NCBI GenBank assembly: GCA_004431415.1
Contig: QPMI01000062.1
Span: 124,001 to 188,000, forward strand
Direction: 5' to 3'
Length of the DNA stretch: 64,000 bases
Source of the DNA: Cyanophora paradoxa CCMP329
Taxonomy: Eukaryota; Plantae; Glaucophyta
Part shown: positions 38,401-47,300 of the stretch, in pieces
Layout: each line of letters opens with the position of its first letter
Position numbering within the stretch: the stretch's first letter is position 1
Translations under genes and position numbers: made by a program
Notes under the pieces: generated by a model
Told to the model about the DNA's origin: nothing
Seen by the model: only the letters and a program-made list of their open reading frames with translations
Database searches by the model: none

Positions 38401-40125
38401 CCCTTCCCGACCTCAGCGATCCGCCGCCGGCCCCGCCCGCCGCCGACCCGTCCCCCGAGCCCGGCCCGCCGGCCCCCGAACGGCGGCCCTCGGAGCCCTC
38501 TCCGGCGCCGGCCGCTGCGGCCTCGCCTCCCCACAGGCGGCTCACAGCGTGCCGGTCCTTGCGATGCCGCCGCGGGGCCGCGGGCCGCCGCCAGCCGGGG
38601 GCCTCGCCCGGTGCCTCCTCTTCCGCCGCCCGCTCCCCGGCCGCCTCCCCTCCCCCGCGCTCTACGGCCGCCGCGCCCGCCCGCCCTCGGGCGGGGAGGG
38701 CGCGGCGACGGCCCGGGGCGCCTCGAGTCGGATGAGGCGGGCGGGGCGCCGCCGGCGGCCTCGCCGCGGACGTCGGGGCCGCCACGGCGCGCGCGGCGGC
38801 CGCCTCGGCGGACGAGGACCGGCCCCGCATCATCGTCCGCACCGCCGCGCCCCCCGCCCCGCGCGACTTCTCCAGCGCGGTGCCCGCCCCCGCCCTCCCG
38901 CCACCTGACCCGGGGGGTGCTGAAGGGGCGCCTCTCCCGCGCGGGGGCAGCACGCGGCGCGGCGGTTCCTGGGGGAGGTGCTGCGCCAGGAGCGGCACCG
39001 CGCGGGGGTGCCGGCCCTCGACGAGCCGCCCCCCGTCCGCACCCTCGAGCGCACCCGCCGCCCTGACCTCGTGCGCCCCTTCTCTCTGTACCCCCGCCGG
39101 CGCTCCCTCCCGCTGAGCGGCGCCGACCGCTGCAGGAGGTGGCGGCGTTCGTGCCCCCCGGGCCGCGGCACCTCTTCTCCTCCGTGCCGCCCCTGGTGCC
39201 CCCCGTGCCGGCCCAAGAAACGGGCGCGGGGGACTGGCGGCGCCTGCGGGCCGGCTTCCGGGGCCCCGAGGAGCCGGCGCGGCACGTCGCCTCGGCGTTC
39301 GCCCCCGCGGATCCGAAGGCGCGCGTGCGGGCCGCCGACACGGGCCCGGAGCGCCTCTACGTGCACGACCCGTTCCGCGACCTCAAGGCCCGCACCCTCG
39401 GCACGGTCAAGAAGACCCGCGTCAAGGACCCGCACCCGCCCCGCGAGGCCGGCAGCGGGCCCGCCCCCGACGAGGCCCGCCCCGCCAGCCGCGGCCCCGC
39501 CGCCTGGAAGCGCCCGCCCTCCGCCTCGGCCGCCGCCGGCACGCCGGCGCCGTCGGCCCCAGCCGCAGGACCCTCCGGGCCCTCTCGCGCCGGCGCTGCA
39601 CGCGGGAGCGGTCGCCTCTCCAGGGCCCTCGGTAAAGCGGCTGCCGGCGCCGGCGCTGCAGGCGCCCGGGCGGCGTCCCCGGCGCCCTCGATCGAGCGCC
39701 TGCCGGAGCGGCGGGAGCCGGGGCCCCGCGAGTCGCTCTACAACTGGGACGTCCTCGCCAGCGACGCGGCGCGCCTCGAGCGGGAGCGGCAGGGGCGGGC
39801 GGCCCTCGCGGCGGCCCTCGCCGGCGGGGTGCCCGCCGAGGACCGCTCCTACTCCCCGATCCAGTGGGAGACGCCGCGGGACGGGGAGGCCCTCGCGCGC
39901 GAGCGCGGCCTCGTGAGCACGCGGCTCGAGGCGAAGCGGACGGTCGCGCTGAGCCGGCGGCACATGTCCCGCACGACGGCCGCCCCGGAGCCCAAGTCCC
40001 TGCAGGGCCTCGCGGGGGCCCTGCGCGCCCCCGCCCCCGCCGCCTCCCACGGGGCCGCCGGCGGGGTCAGCCTCGGCGCCTTCCACGCCGCCCGCTACGA
40101 GGCCTTACGCGTCCCAACTCCCTAG
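35439..40125 (+). CDS. Large unknown protein with two PPC-like (pre-peptidase C-terminal) beta domains and a long Pro/Ala/Ser-rich tail
   Basis: GNVQAGEYAYFRY..GSARLFMS..PCYIAVLG and GQVKPGQGAFFKY..GDADLYVS..PTHENFIWKS..GW|YYVSVFG. The exon chain in the tail is uncertain and could be two genes. Confidence 0.6.
38119..38255. repeat. 12-bp minisatellite (ccccgcctctcg), ~11 copies
   Basis: Directly visible tandem array, with one 11-bp variant unit. Confidence 0.9.
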
Positions 40126-40257: not shown

Positions 40258-43200
40258 TCAGTAGTGGACCCCCGGCGGGGGGTGCGGGAACGGGAGGTGG
40301 AGCACGTGGGGGAAGACGGCGGGCGGGAGGGGGATCGTGGAGGGGAGGGGGATGGGCGGGGGTAGGAAGGGCATCATGGGGTACGCGAACGGGTGGGCTG
40401 GCGGGGGCGGCAGCCCGCCGGGCATCGACACCGGCACCAGCGCATTGGAGAGGCTCGCGACGGGGGAGGATGATGCGGCGGCGGCGGCGGCGGCGGATGA
40501 GCGGCTCCTGGTGGGCGCCGGCTGCTGCGGCGTCGCCGTCTTGCTCTTGTTCTTGGAGCCCGGGGGCCGGCCGCGCTTGCGCTTAACCGGCTGCCCGTCC
40601 GGCCCCACGGGCAATGCGGTTGGCGCCGAGGCGGCGGAGCTCGATGACGCCGTTGGCGGCGCCGAGCTCGACGACGACGCCGCGGCTGCCTTGCTCCCGC
40701 TCGGCCGTCCCTCCTTGCTTCCGCTCGGGCGCCCCTCCGTGCCTTCGCTGGCCTGCTTCTCCTTGCTCGCGCTCGCCTGCCCGTCCGCCGGCTTGGCCTG
40801 CGGCGGGCGTCAGGCGGGTCCCGGCGACGGTCAGGGGAGGCGGCGCGCCTGGGCTGGGCGCCCGGGCTTCTTCTTGGCCGCGTCGCCGCTCGCCGGGGCG
40901 CCGTTCGCCGCCTGCGCCGGCTTGGCGCCGCCGCTCGGCGTGGCGGGGCCCCTGCGCGGCGGTCAGGGCGAGAGTGGCGCGGGTGGCGAGGAGGAGACTC
41001 ACGGCGTCGGGGGTGCGCCCGGCAGCGGGTGCTTCCGCAGCCGGCCCGGCTTCCGCTTGATCGGCTGCCCATCCGGGCCGACGGCTGCCGGCGGATGGGG
41101 CGCCGGCGCGGGCGAAGCGCCCGTCGCAGGCGGCGGCTTCGGCTGCGCGGGGCGGTTCGCCGCGCCGGCGCTGCGGGGCGATGGGGCGGGGAAGCACCTT
41201 GTTCTTGGAGCCCGGGGGCCGGCCGCGCTTGCGCTTCACCGGCTGCCCGTCGGGGCCGAGGGCGACCGGGGTCGCAGCCGAGGGCGACTTGGCGGCGGGC
41301 GTGGGCGGCCTGGGGGACTTGGGCGTCCCCGCCCCCTCCTTCCCCTCCGCCTGCTTCCCCTTCCCGGAGCCCGGCGGCCGCCCCGGGCGCCGCTTCGCCT
41401 CCCCGCCGGCCCCGGCGCTCGGCCCCTCCGCCTTCTTCGGGCGCCCGGGCTTGCGCTTCACCTCGCCCTCCTGCCCCGCCGCCTTCTTCGGCTTCTCGGC
41501 CGGCCTGGCGGCCTGCTTCTCCTTCCTCTTGGGCGCCTCCTCGCTCGTGGCCGACGAGGCCGAGGGGCGGGCCTTCTTCGCGGGGGGCCGCCCCCGCCGC
41601 TTCGGCCGCGGCGTCTCGTCCCCGTCCACGATGCTGTCGTCGTCGCTCCCGCTCCCGCGCTCGCTGTGCCGCCCGCAGTCAGCGCGCCTGCGCAGGGCGG
41701 GGCGGGGCGGGGCGGGGCGGGGCGGGGGCGGCGGCGCCTCGGCTCGAAGGTCGCGTCGCTCTCGCTTCCGTCGTCGTCGCCCCAGCGCTCCAGGGCCCGC
41801 GCCAGCCGCCCGCCCCCGCCCTCCTCCCCGCCCTCCTCCTCCTCGTCCTCTTCCGAGCCAGACCCGCTCCCGCCCCCGCCCCCGCTCCCGCTCTCGTCGC
41901 CGCTGCCGTCCTCGCTGCCGCTGCCGCTGCCGCTGCCGCTCCCACTCCCGCTGCCGCCGCCGCCGTCCTCGCTATCGCTGCCGCTGCCGCTGCCGCTGCC
42001 GTCGCTGCCGCCCTCGCTGCCCTCCTCCTCGTAGTCCTCCTCGCCCTCCGAGGAGGACGCGAAGTCGCCCGCCAGCAGCTCCGCGACTGCGCCCCGCGCC
42101 CGTCAGGCGCAGCACCGGGCCGCGCCAGCCGCCCGCCCGCGCCAACGCACCGCCGGCCCCGGACGACTGCTTCTTCCGCGACGAGTGGCGCGCCTGCGGG
42201 GCCGTGAGGCGCCGCGAGAGGGGCCGCGGGGGCGAGCGGAGAGGCGGGGCGCACGGGGGCAGGCGAGTCGGGCTCGACGCAGTTCTTGTCGGGGACGATC
42301 TGGACGCGCTCGCGGACGAGGGCGTAGAGGGGCTGCACGAGCCCCGTCTCGATCGGCATCGCCTTCTCGCCCCCGTGCTCCCCGCAGTCCATCACCACCT
42401 CCACGCTCCTCGGCGGCTCTGCCCCGCCCCGCCCCCGGCTCGCCCTCGCGCGGGGCCGGCGAGGTGCGCGCGAGGCCGGCGGGCGGGGCGCACTCGCGGG
42501 GAGGATGAGGCGGCCCTCGCGGTTCTCCCGGATGGGGATGCCGCGGAACTGCACCTGCTTCATCTTCGACCACGGGCAGAAGAAAGCCTCGCCCTGCCCG
42601 CGGCCGCGTCAGGCGCGCCCGGGCGGCCCACGGGCGGGGGTAGAGGGTTCGCGCGCCTGCCGCTCGTCGAACATGGCGAGCCCGTTGTCCAGGGGGTACA
42701 CCAGCGTGCTCACCCCCCGCACGTTCAGCGTCTTGGAACGCGACAGGCTGCGCCCGCCGCTCGGCCGCCGCAGGGCGCGGGGCGGGGCGGGCAGAGGCGG
42801 GGCGGCGGCACCTCTCCCACTCTCGGATGGTGCCGAGCGTCTTGCGGGAGATGCGGGAGAGAAACTTCGCGAAGAACTCCGCGATGCCCTCCTCCTCAAT
42901 CATGACGTCGTACTGCCGCCCCCGCGTCAGCCGCGCCACGCGCAGGGCACCCCGGCGGGGGCGCGGGCGGCCGCCGTACTTGCTTCTCCTCCTCCCTGGC
43001 GGGGCGTGAGCGGGGGCGGGGCGAGGGGCGGGCGGGGCGGCGGGCGGACGCGTTGATGGCGAGGCAGAACTCGACCTCGGGCTCGTCCAGGTTCGTCACC
43101 TTGGCGATCAGGATGTGGTACTCCTTTTCCATCACCAGGACGGGCCTCGACAAGTTGATCTGCGCGCGCGCCGCCGCCGCTGAGCCGCTCTCTGATTGAA

Positions 43201-44198
43201 AAAATGGTGCGCACGGGCCGCGCACCATGACGTAAGTCTCATTCTTCGTTGGGAGCATGAGCACGTCCGTCACCCGCTTGTACAGGATCTCCGCGTCGAA
43301 ATTGTTGCCGCCCAGAATCAACTGCAAGCACGCTAAGCTCTCTATCGCACGAAGCGGGCTACCCGGACCTTGTGCTGGAAAATCCGCACGAGGAACCGTT
43401 TGCCGCTGCGTAAATGCGTCTAGCTGCGCTCGAAGCAGACGAGCGCGGACTCTCGCACCGCGGCCTCGGGAAGAGAAGGGTATCGATCTGGCAGCACTCT
43501 GTTGTGCCCGACGCGTCGGGTGTCACTTCCGGCCCATCTGGCGAAGTGCCTCGAGAGTTAGGACGTCATCTCGATATTTGTCGAGAGGGACGCGGAGCGT
43601 ACCTACTATGACATCCTTTTTCAGGAGAGTTTTCAGACTGTCCCGCAGGGACTGGAAGTCCTGTGCGTATGCGGCAGGGCATTCGGCGAGTCGGCGACCG
43701 GTCAGCATCGCTTTGCGCAGGCGAAGAGCCCGCGCGCAGCACCTGTGCCGAGAAACCGGAAAAGCGATGCTCCGACGATGCGTCCGAAGAGCTCCCCCCT
43801 CTAACCGGGTCGGCGACCACTGTTAGGAGAAGGTCCACGCAGTCATTAGGGGGGCGTGTGAAGAACGTCTGCGCGCGAGCACGGGCACAGTAAATGCGTC
43901 TGCCTCGCCCGCGCTGCGACCCTCGCTCCAGCTACACCCCGCGCAGGTGCGCTCGCACCCGCAGGGTAGCGGACGCGATCCTCGAGGCCGGGAGCGTTAC
44001 CTCCCCGCTCAGCTCGCTGGCAAGCTTGCTCCCGTCCTTTGCATGCTGCGGTTTGTACACGACGCTGGCGGAATTTGAATGCAGCTCCACAACTCCCTCC
44101 GCCTCCTGCGGCCCCGCTGATCGGCCGGCGCCGACTCTTGCAGCGGCAAGACTCACCTGCCCCTGCCGGATCTCGTAGCGAACGCCCGGGAAGACCAT
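40258..44198 (-). CDS. Divergent SSRP1/Pob3-like histone chaperone with acidic tract and multiple AT-hooks
   Basis: Spliced N-terminal PH domain (MVFPGVRYEI..GVVEL..VVYK..HRFSGFSAQDFQSLRDSLK). Middle double-PH domain (PRGKRFLVRIFQHKLILGGNNFDAEILY..LMLP..MINLSRP..YHILI..LVYPLDNG..KQVQFRG). Then a D/E/S/G tract and RGRP/PGRP motifs. Confidence 0.75.
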
Positions 44199-44354
44199 CC
44201 CGCGCCCCCTTCCCGTGTACCCAGTCGAGTAGGGGTACGCGTTCGAAAAAAACGAACGTGGCCGTCGGGGCCGTCTTTCCGGCGTTCCTATCGTCAAGTG
44301 TAACAGCGTTCTAACCGCGCACTCCTTGAGCGGAGGCGGCGCGCGTTGCGCACC

Positions 44355-47300
44355 ATGGCGGCGGCGGACGCGCAGAACATCAGGGTCGCTGTGCGAGTGC
44401 GGCCGTTCAGCAAAAAGTGAGCGTCGCGCAACCTTCCCCAGCCGCGCCTTGCTGTCCTTTGTGAAACGCCGGGCCGAGCGTCTGACCGCGTCCGGCGCGC
44501 AGTGAGCAGCCCGATGACCAGCTCGTCGAAGCCCAGCCGCCTTCTCTTCAGATTCGCAACCCGGCGGCGATGGGCGAAGTCAAGAACTTCACCTTTGACT
44601 ACGTCTACGACTCGCGCTATCCCGCGCCAGGGAACGGCCTCGACCAGCAGCAGGTTCAGATCTTCACAGACCTTGGCCAGCAGGTCGTCGACAACGCATG
44701 GGCCGGTGCGCTCCTTGCACGTGTCCGCAGCCTGTTGCCGCTGAGCGGCGCTTCAGGTCTCAACAGCAGTGTCTTCGCGTACGGCCAGACGGGCTCAGGG
44801 AAGACGCATACAATGATGGGTAGCCATGACAAGGCCCGCGGTCTCATCCCTCGAATCTGTGAGGTGCGGAACGCCACCGCGTCCTGCAGCGGTTGAGCGT
44901 CCGTGCATCGAACCCGAGCGCGCAGAGCTTGTTCTGGAAGCTCGCCAACGACGCTTCGAGCGGCACTCTGAACTCCGTGGAGGTGTCCTATATGGAAATC
45001 TACAACGAAGTCATCCGGGACCTGCTCGTCCCAGTCAAGAGCACCGCGCCCGTGCGTGCCTGTGCATCGCGGCACGGAGTCAGCAAGCTGTCTGACTGTC
45101 GCCTCTCTGCAGGGCGGTCTGAAAGTGCGCGAAAACCCGACGTCGGGGCCCTTCGTGGACGGCCTGTCCAAGGTGCTGGCGAAGACGCATGAGGAGGTCT
45201 TGGACCTCATCGAGATCGGCACGAACATCCGCACCGTCGCCTCCACCGCCATGAACCAGCAGTCCTCGCGCTCCCACGCCGTCTTCACCCTCAAGCTGAC
45301 CCAGACGCGGGTTCGCGCCTTGCCGGACCGGGCGCTGTCGCCGCCCCCTTTGACTTTCACTTGTCGCGATCTCCAGGAAGAGGGTGGCAAGAAACACCAG
45401 AAGACATCCCAAGTGCGTCTCAGTTCTTGGGCCGCTGCTGCGCGCCTCCTGTAACCTTCCGCTGCAGGTGCATCTGGTCGATCTTGCTGGCAGCGAGCGC
45501 ATCGACGTGGCGTCGGCAGCAGCAGCCGCTGCCAAGAACCGCGGCACGATCGCCGGCGGCACTCAGGGGAAGAGCGCCGCTGAGATGCGGATGAAGGAGG
45601 GAGCGGCCATCAACAAGGTTCCTCCTTTTATTGGTTCTCCCTCTTCTTTTCTGATCCCCTTGGCAGTCTCTCTCGGCCCTGTCGAACGTCATCTACTCGC
45701 TGGCCGAGATGCAGTCGACCAAGAAGAAGGGTCCGCCCCGCTGCGCGCCCTCCGCCGGCGGCAGCTGACGGGGCGCGGGGGCAGACATCACGCACATCCC
45801 GTACCGCGACTCGGTGCTGACTTGGCTGCTGAAGGAGTCGCTGGGGGGCAACGCGAAGACGATCATGATCGCGACGATCAGCCCGTCGGCGGCGTGCTAC
45901 CAGGAGTCCATGAGCACGCTCCGCTACGCCGAGCGCGCCAAGAAGATCGTCAACCGCGCCATCGTCAACGAGGACTCCAACGCCAAGCTCATCCGCGAGC
46001 TCCGGTGCCGCCCCGCGCCGCCCCGCCCCGCGCCCCGCGCCCCTCACGCGCGCCCCAGCGAGGAGAACTCGCGCCTGAAGCAGCAGCTCGACGATCTAAT
46101 TAAAAATGGCACGCAGAGCATCGGCATGAGCGGTGCGTCCCGCGCCGCGCCCCCGCCCCGCGTGCCCCGCAGAGCGCCGGCGCGCAGGCCTGCTGCAGCT
46201 GAAGAACGACCTGGAGAGCAACGAGAAGCTGATGGAGGAGGCGGAGCTGTCGCCGGAGGAGCAGATGCGCCGCGCGGAGGAGCAGTCGCGCCAGAAGATG
46301 GCGCAGCTCCACAACATGGGGCTCGGCTCCCGCTCCAACATGGGGCCCCACCTGGTCCGCGCCGCGCCTCCGCGGGGGCCCGGGCCGCCTGACGCCCGGG
46401 CAGGTGAACCTGAACGAGGACCCGATGCTCTCGGAGACGCTGACCTTCGTGCTGAAGCCCGGGGCGAACAACATCGGGCGGGAGGACGCGGCGCGGACGC
46501 AGGACATCAAGCTCGCCGGCGCGTACATCCTGCACGAGCACTGCATCATCTACAACAAGGAGCGCGACGGGGGCGGCCTCGAGATCCACCCGCTCAACAA
46601 GTCCCGCACCTTCGTGAACGGGCACCTCATCACGCAGCCCGTCATGCTCGAGTACGGCTCCCGCAGTGCGCTGGCCCCGCAGCCTCCCCGCGCCCCCCGA
46701 TCCGCGCCGCCCTCCCCCTCACCGCCCCCGCAGTCGTCCTCGGCAAGAACCACGTGTTCCGCCTGGACCCGCCTGGCGCGCACAAGTACGGCCCTCCCTC
46801 CCCGCTGCACTCCCCCGCACCCCGGGCGCGGCCTGACGCGGGGGCAGCCGCGACCAGCCGGACGAGCGGGACTGGCTCTACGCGATCAACGAGCTGAACG
46901 CGGTGCAGGGCTCGCGCCTGCAGGACGAGGACGAGGGGGGCATCTCGGTGGCGACGGGCAAGCAGACCTCGATGATCGTGCAGCCGGACCCCGAGCTCGA
47001 GCGGCGCCTCAAGGAGATGGAGGAGGAGATGCACCGCCAGCAGGAGCAGGTCCGGCGCGCCAACGACGAGCGGCGCCAGCTGGAGGAGAAGATGGCCCAG
47101 GAGAAGCGCGACATGGAGCAGCGCTTCGTGCAGGAGCAGGAGAAGTACCAGAAGGGCCTCTCCGAGGTGATGGCGAACATGACGACGACGGCGACGGCGA
47201 CGGCCGCCGACTACTCGACGACGCCGAGCGACGGCTCCAAGTACAGCTTCCTGCCCCCGCGCGAGCGCCGGGAGTACATCTCGCGGATCGAGGCGGTGCG

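Follow-up and report, generated by a model that had tools for sequence, protein, structure and literature searches.

SSRP1 and Pob3, components of FACT-type histone chaperones, are built on four PH domains; in human SSRP1 (hSSRP1), PH1 comprises residues 1-100, PH2 residues 101-195, and PH3/4 residues 196-430, Spt16 binds through PH2 and no longer does so when this module is absent, and H2A-H2B is bound through a (D/E)XX(F/Y) motif (PMC8639466). The HMG box of the plant and animal proteins is missing from Pob3 in fungi, amoebozoa, ciliates, apicomplexans, and excavates, and, to engage nucleosomes, the chaperone core of yeast FACT needs Nhp6, a separate module that binds DNA non-specifically (PMC6502085). 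In a 64,000-nucleotide stretch (the window) of the glaucophyte Cyanophora paradoxa CCMP329 (GenBank assembly GCA_004431415.1, contig QPMI01000062.1, positions 124,001 to 188,000; coordinates below are those of the window), a predicted gene on the minus strand, with its start ATG at 44198 and its stop TGA at 40260-40258, appears to join the core of such a chaperone to a tail of AT hooks.

The predicted protein resembles SSRP1 and Pob3 in its acidic disordered tract, which carries (D/E)XX(F/Y)-type anchors and directly follows the PH modules; it would also share with them a PH-like module at the N-terminus and a tandem PH as its middle domain (its best structural and Pfam neighbor), and with SSRP1 a C-terminal appendage that binds DNA and lies in a basic region. 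It differs from plant and animal SSRP1 in having no HMG box but a tail of 424 amino acids with six AT hooks along with two degenerate cores, and from SSRP1 and Pob3 alike in that the model has room for three PH domains rather than four and has diverged so far that no Pfam family passes its cut-off and an exhaustive HMMER search finds no SSRP1. Rtt106 also has a tandem PH followed by an acidic tail, and works without Spt16; however, it begins with a short helical homodimerization domain, whereas the Cyanophora protein begins with a beta-rich-looking module of 110 residues and a single C-terminal helix, and Rtt106 has no AT hooks and is only 7% identical in the structural alignment described below, compared with 14-16% for Pob3 and SSRP1.

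The hooks themselves resemble those of HMGA and the plant AHL proteins, with an RGRP core, basic flanks, and several copies along a disordered chain; two of them have the extended form RGRPPGSKNK, which is typical of hook 2 in HMGA and of the type-I hooks in plant AHL proteins. HMGA, however, is without a folded domain, and the domain of AHL proteins is PPC/DUF296; in neither are the hooks joined to PH-type modules of histone chaperones. Compared with yeast FACT and Nhp6, the DNA-binding module would here be covalently attached, and of the minor-groove AT-hook type rather than an HMG box. Our literature search turned up no description of a single protein that combines AT hooks with SSRP1, Pob3, or Rtt106, and no paper on a Cyanophora SSRP1.

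The reading that we favor, with a probability of about 0.55, is that the locus is one nuclear gene encoding a very diverged FACT-type chaperone of the SSRP1/Pob3 branch, tethered to DNA by AT hooks and probably independent of Spt16. The exon model was made by reading the minus strand base by base, and the resulting list of coordinates was then checked by script. It comprises 19 exons (2,790 nucleotides, or 929 codons plus TGA) with no internal stop, and all exon junctions keep phase; the 18 introns are all 47-132 nucleotides long and end in CAG, 15 of them starting with GT and 3 with GC. Guanine-plus-cytosine (GC) content by codon position is 0.67/0.56/0.91 across the model, this periodicity is present in every exon, and the coding signal of the region is confined to the minus strand. 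On the strength of the difference between third-position (GC3) and second-position (GC2) values and of the regularity of the introns, the 19-exon region is more than chance as a gene. Its features are as follows.

40258..44198, minus strand: whole gene model; open frame through 19 exons, GC3 0.91 vs GC2 0.56.

43603..44198, minus strand: exons 1-4; N-terminal PH-sized module, amino acids 1-110, apparently beta-rich, with the C-terminal helix-like segment DFQSLRDSLKTLLKK.

42812..43537, minus strand: exons 5-10; putative first PH of the tandem (PH3-like), amino acids 112-256, including the 16-nucleotide micro-exon at 42995-42980.

42255..42747, minus strand: exons 11-13; putative second PH of the tandem (PH4 / Rtt106-like), amino acids 257-375.

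42594..42656, minus strand: intron 11; GC-AG, donor GCGCGC.

41738..42086, minus strand: exon 15; acidic Gly/Ser/Glu/Asp tract, amino acids 391-505, isoelectric point (pI) 4.05.

41688..41737, minus strand: intron 15; GC-AG, donor GCGCCG, 50 nucleotides, 96% GC, joining the acidic tract to the hook exons.

41198..41687, minus strand: exon 16; hooks 1-4 (KRRGRPP, KRKPGRPK, KRRPGRPP, KRKRGRPPGSKNK), amino acids 507-669, GC3 0.99.

41003..41142, minus strand: exon 17; hook unit in degenerate form (GPDGQPIKRKPGRL), a repeat at the level of DNA.

40849..40951, minus strand: exon 18; hook 5 (KKKPGRP).

40798-40848, minus strand: intron 18; GC-AG, donor GCGCGC.

40258..40797, minus strand: exon 19; two degenerate GRP cores, hook 6 (KRKRGRPPGSKNK, amino acid 826), an Ala/Ser run, a Pro-rich aromatic C-terminus, and TGA.

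The folded part of the protein (amino acids 1-375) consists of three PH-sized modules, and the Pfam and fold matches fall in the second and third of these. Sequence searches were made piece by piece or exon by exon. Among 20 pieces (ten stop-free pieces and ten trimmed exons), the sole Pfam family match was PH1_SSRP1-like (PF21103), aligned to exon 7 over positions 29-59 of the 130 in the model (E 0.04-0.056; 13.8-14.3 bits, the cut-off being 27). Exon 7 carries the peptide LILGGNNFDAEILY...LMLP; PRPRGKRFLVRIF lies on exons 5/6, and LVYPLDNG on exon 11. The AlphaFold prediction for exons 7-9 was of unusable quality (predicted local distance difference test [pLDDT] 44), and its matches to PAS and tail-tube proteins were discarded.

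For the last PH, the piece that was folded (42255-42593) comprised exon 12, intron 12 read through in frame, and exon 13, and was modeled by single-sequence AlphaFold. The best model (pLDDT 64, with 71-81 in the exons and less than 50 in the translated intron) has three strands followed by a C-terminal helix. When this model was compared by VIA-align with 48,161 representative PDB chains, PH chains of FACT or Rtt106 filled about 12 of the 26 top rows, with root-mean-square deviations (rmsd) of 1.7-3.0: the middle domain of Spt16 (4ioy, Z 5.9); 7xsx_k, which is probably Pob3 to judge from its residue numbers (Z 5.7, 15% identity); the middle domain of Pob3 (2gcj, residues 407-474, Z 5.5, rmsd 2.0); the middle domain of hSSRP1 (6l1e, Z 5.2, rmsd 1.9, 16% identity); 9eh2_y (Z 5.0, 16% identity); and the second PH of Rtt106 (3gyo, Z 4.7, rmsd 1.7 over 56 residues, 7% identity). 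Identity was 14-16% to Pob3 and SSRP1, compared with 3-7% to Spt16 and Rtt106. The N-terminal domain of SSRP1 and Pob3-N were among the lower rows, and generic PH, PTB, and FERM domains ranked below the FACT and Rtt106 chains although they are far more numerous in the PDB. The fold signal, which is modest, consists of one family filling the top rows and of an aligned part that is the last PH of the middle domain, as collinearity predicts. In the ESM Atlas, an SSRP1 cluster had the highest template-modeling score by query (0.49), and the nearest families in a language-model comparison were PH-like ones from bacteria, at low scores.

The Pfam match of exon 7 and the fold match of exons 12-13 are collinear and at the right distance, and the acidic tract follows directly. 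Modules 2 and 3 may together represent a FACT-type tandem PH closest to the middle domain of SSRP1/Pob3, an assignment that is supported but weak. An initial sequence-only reading of this DNA had already called the protein SSRP1/Pob3-like on the basis of short peptide matches. Those matches, taken on their own, are at chance level by our analysis: phmmer searches with single exons against the PDB gave no SSRP1, and the PDB sequence closest to the LVYPLDNG exon is an actin peptide. What survives of the claim is the fold of exons 12-13, to which FACT PH domains are nearest, and the match of exon 7 to PH1_SSRP1-like; the profile evidence falls short, at 14 bits where 27 are needed.

Several observations weigh against a FACT-type assignment. 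The model of exons 12-13 was made from a single sequence that includes a translated intron, and only one of five models reached pLDDT 64, the others being poor; Foldseek, which the sequence-only reading had proposed as a check, found no PDB match for it; and the VIA-align scores (Z no higher than 5.9) are below the usual noise ceiling and too low to stand alone. POB3_N, SSrecog, and Rtt106 were unmatched by Pfam, no family reaching its cut-off in any of the 20 pieces, and when all PDB sequences were searched by phmmer, neither the two long pieces nor the three single exons used as queries retrieved SSRP1 or Pob3. Three places in the exon model are also uncertain (the acceptor of exon 5, the 16-nucleotide micro-exon, and the donor of intron 11). 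Searches of wider scope were likewise negative. An exhaustive phmmer search of 1.84 billion proteins with 89 residues of the last PH (exons 12-13) gave no SSRP1 at E of 0.001 or less, its single match (P0001) being repeat-driven junk that was rejected as chance; word searches with the PH4 piece and the hook piece found nothing within 170-540 and 254-808 amino acids, ranges that both leave out a length of 929; and a language-model search with the PH3 piece gave no usable match. Taken with the collinear matches described above, these results indicate a kinship with SSRP1 that is real but weak.

The N-terminal module (110 residues) has a strand-then-helix pattern and a GFS..DF..L motif, which lies in a peptide spanning exons 3/4 (HRFSGFSAQ followed by DFQSL). 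We take it to fit the N-terminal PH1 of SSRP1/Pob3, at the level of motifs only and by eye; its last strand runs straight into the helix (HRFSGFSAQDFQSL), presumably a PH1 pattern rather than a PH2 pattern. Pfam searches with exons 1-2 and exon 3 gave no match up to E 10, and PDB sequences gave none. The resemblance of this putative module to PH1 of SSRP1 is supported but weak. About 25 residues lie between its helix (amino acid 110) and the PRG strand of the next module (amino acids 134-138), and introns 4 and 5, at 65 and 53 nucleotides, are too small for a hidden exon or domain. A hidden exon was also considered in intron 2, where the sole candidate would leave an intron of 20 nucleotides and was rejected. 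Because there are three modules and so short a gap, the Spt16-binding PH2 (SSrecog) seems to be missing from the predicted protein; Pfam SSrecog was unmatched across the 20 pieces searched. If module 1 is instead PH2, then PH1 is the missing module. A protein that lacks PH2 would probably act without Spt16, as Rtt106 does.

The extreme divergence of the sequence suggests a paralogue, with a canonical SSRP1 probably encoded elsewhere in the Cyanophora genome, since 89 residues of a canonical SSRP1 should retrieve hundreds of relatives. The initial picture of an SSRP1 in which AT hooks simply take the place of the HMG box therefore has to be revised: with three PH modules instead of four and a divergence of this degree, the protein looks like a diverged SSRP1-like paralogue.

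Downstream of the PH modules, the acidic tract has 34 Asp and Glu residues compared with 3 Lys and Arg residues, and terminates in SESDATFEP. Aromatic anchors stand in acidic context within it (EEDY, GDF, and DATF), and two of them, EEDY and DATF, fit the (D/E)XX(F/Y) anchor of hSSRP1.

The tail (amino acids 506-929) is a low-complexity region rich in Pro, Ala, Ser, Gly, and Lys, with a pI of 11.1. It contains eight GRP cores. Basic residues flank six of them (KRRGRPP, KRKPGRPK, KRRPGRPP, KKKPGRP, and QPVKRKRGRPPGSKNK, which occurs twice in identical form), and the other two are degenerate (EGRPSGSK); a further copy of the hook unit has lost its proline (KRKPGRL). Pfam AT_hook (PF02178) aligns over 13 of 13 model positions on both copies of KRKRGRPPGSKNK, with 14.3 bits at 41198-41266 and 13.1 bits at 40525-40614; each score is below the whole-protein cut-off of 17.4 bits, and their sum is above it. 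The hook unit is duplicated at the level of DNA, where 86 nucleotides at 40546-40631 match 41198-41283 with 85% identity; a third copy, which has diverged further, is found at 41040-41091. The peptides, acidic tract, and AT hooks described in the sequence-only reading are all present on the minus strand at the positions that it gave; its count of five clear hooks plus degenerate ones becomes six with basic flanks, along with KRKPGRL and the two EGRPSGSK cores, and its statement that there is no HMG box agrees with the silence of Pfam HMG_box in every tail piece. The last 60 or so residues (40261-40440, minus strand) are Pro-rich and aromatic (PPPPAHPFAYPMMPFLPPPIPLP...FPHPPPGVHY), without a family match.

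A composite of this kind could arise if two genes, one for a PH and acidic protein and the other for a separate AT-hook protein, had been wrongly joined, and the sequence-only reading had itself named a separate hook gene as the finding that would count against it. The junction between the acidic tract and the hooks does need a GC-AG intron. However, no ATG occurs in any frame of the minus strand from 42255 to 41073 (1.18 kb upstream of 41073); upstream of exon 16, which carries the first hooks, the frame of that exon stays open as far as 41971 and contains no Met, and the model has no Met between amino acids 341 and 875. A separate hook gene would therefore have no start codon available, and the four hooks of exon 16 have to be read in continuation of the frame upstream. 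The acidic exon (ending at 41738) and the first hook exon (starting at 41687) are only 50 nucleotides apart, which leaves no room for a promoter, and phase is also preserved at two further junctions within the tail, of GC-AG or GT-AG type. A wrong join is thus very improbable, and the AT-hook exons appear to belong to the same predicted gene as the PH modules and the acidic tract. Within this single gene, the PH modules could still be those of a lineage-specific PH-like protein unrelated to SSRP1, in which a common PH superfold and chance motifs mimic the family; the product would then be a novel AT-hook chromatin protein. Every sequence match is sub-threshold, the structural evidence is a low-confidence model with Z below 6 and a negative Foldseek search, LVYPLDNG is closest to actin in the PDB, and no relatives emerge from 1.84 billion proteins, all of which would suit such a protein. 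We nevertheless consider it unlikely, given that generic PH, PTB, and FERM domains, far commoner in the PDB, rank below FACT and Rtt106, that the sole Pfam match is to an SSRP1 PH family and is collinear with the fold match at the right distance, and that the tandem PH is succeeded, as it is in FACT-type chaperones, by an acidic stretch bearing aromatic anchors.

The gene could also be the only, genuine SSRP1 orthologue of Cyanophora, pairing with Spt16 through module 1 as its PH2 and using hooks in place of the HMG box. This alternative shares the fold evidence and the order of parts with the reading that we favor, and spacing alone cannot tell PH1 from PH2, as any PH ends in a helix about 25 residues before the next; furthermore, the HMG box is absent from Pob3 in many lineages, so the DNA-binding appendage varies (PMC6502085). 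Canonical SSRP1 and Pob3 are well conserved, yet no SSRP1 emerged at E of 0.001 or less when 1.84 billion proteins were searched with 89 residues from the last PH, and Pfam SSrecog and Rtt106 are silent. The passage of the last strand of module 1 into its helix (HRFSGFSAQDFQSL) is also presumably as in PH1 and not as in PH2. A genuine orthologue is for these reasons quite doubtful. Along with the favored reading of a very diverged, AT-hook-tethered FACT-type chaperone, we tentatively put forward a more specific possibility, which we hold to be somewhat unlikely as it stands: a glaucophyte stand-alone chaperone derived from SSRP1 by loss of the Spt16-binding domain and acquisition of a tail with multivalent AT hooks, or, in its stronger form, the lineage's only SSRP1. 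The evidence of homology is weak, and the gene itself is a prediction.

Splicing of the gene relies at three places on GC donors, in introns 11, 15, and 18, all within the half of the gene that has about 80% GC; the eight introns of the half with 57-73% GC all start with GT. For intron 11, an alternative GT donor at 42713 would delete LVYPLDNG and was rejected, the 57 nucleotides that it removes looking like coding sequence; GC by codon position in these 57 nucleotides, upstream of the GC donor, is 0.68/0.32/1.00, which indicates that they are coding and makes the GT donor unlikely. The intron 15 stretch contains no GT, and if it is left unspliced, the frame enters an Arg/Pro-rich translation of non-coding appearance and meets a stop at 41460-41458. 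Exon 18 is without any GT, so the GC donor of intron 18 is needed to keep the frame. The predicted 16-nucleotide micro-exon (42980-42995, minus strand; EEEKQ) is needed for the frame between exons 8 and 10. Three introns on the minus strand (41688-41737, 42996-43049, and 42748-42811) have a GC content of 86-96% and, on the sense strand, are strongly enriched in C, with CCCCG/CCCGCC runs (about five CCCCG units in intron 15); a C-tract may stand in these introns in place of the usual pyrimidine tract. A CTGAC-like motif lies 10-17 nucleotides ahead of the acceptor in several introns.

Base composition changes in a step inside the gene at about 43000, with exons 1-7 lying where GC is 60-66% and exons 9-19 where it is 75-82% (local GC is 0.60-0.66 at approximately 43,000-44,600 and 0.75-0.82 at 40,400-42,800); intron GC rises at the same place, from 0.57-0.73 to 0.75-0.96. 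Two stop-free open reading frames (ORFs) on the plus strand, antisense to the gene (40337-42034 and 41181-42905; 565 and 574 amino acids), are rich in Arg, Pro, and Ala and look like by-products of extreme GC, not genes. The 5′ neighbor is a divergent kinesin gene on the plus strand (ATG 44356), and the 3′ neighbor is a convergent plus-strand ORF ending at 40125; since these two bound the locus, no further upstream exon is possible. Only about 157 bp (44199-44355) separate the ATG of the gene from that of the kinesin gene, whose motor motifs lie on the plus strand, and the two probably share a two-way promoter.

If the favored reading is correct, the tandem PH would hold H3-H4 and the acidic tract would hold H2A-H2B, while multivalent AT hooks would insert into the minor groove and so anchor the protein on AT-rich DNA, taking the DNA-tethering role that the HMG box or Nhp6 has for FACT. 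With PH2 lost, the protein may act without Spt16, in the manner of Rtt106. The Ser-rich acidic tract stands next to a basic tail (pI 11), and an intramolecular contact between them might gate DNA binding, possibly via phosphorylation. Targeting of the AT-richer intergenic DNA by the protein, as proposed in the sequence-only reading, is speculation.

FACT-type chaperones borrow their DNA-binding module, either as a built-in HMG box or as free Nhp6, and a version with AT hooks would, if true, show that such modules are interchangeable. Should the Spt16-binding domain also be lacking, the SSRP1 scaffold would be able to work alone outside fungi and animals. A chaperone of this kind would be recruited directly to the rare AT-rich DNA of a genome with about 80% GC, a Rtt106-like solution that would have arisen independently outside fungi. 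If the protein is the only SSRP1 of its lineage, glaucophyte FACT would reach DNA via AT hooks instead of an HMG box. In either case, the finding would, if true, link the handling of chromatin, in a testable way, to the sharp GC/AT domain structure of the Cyanophora genome.

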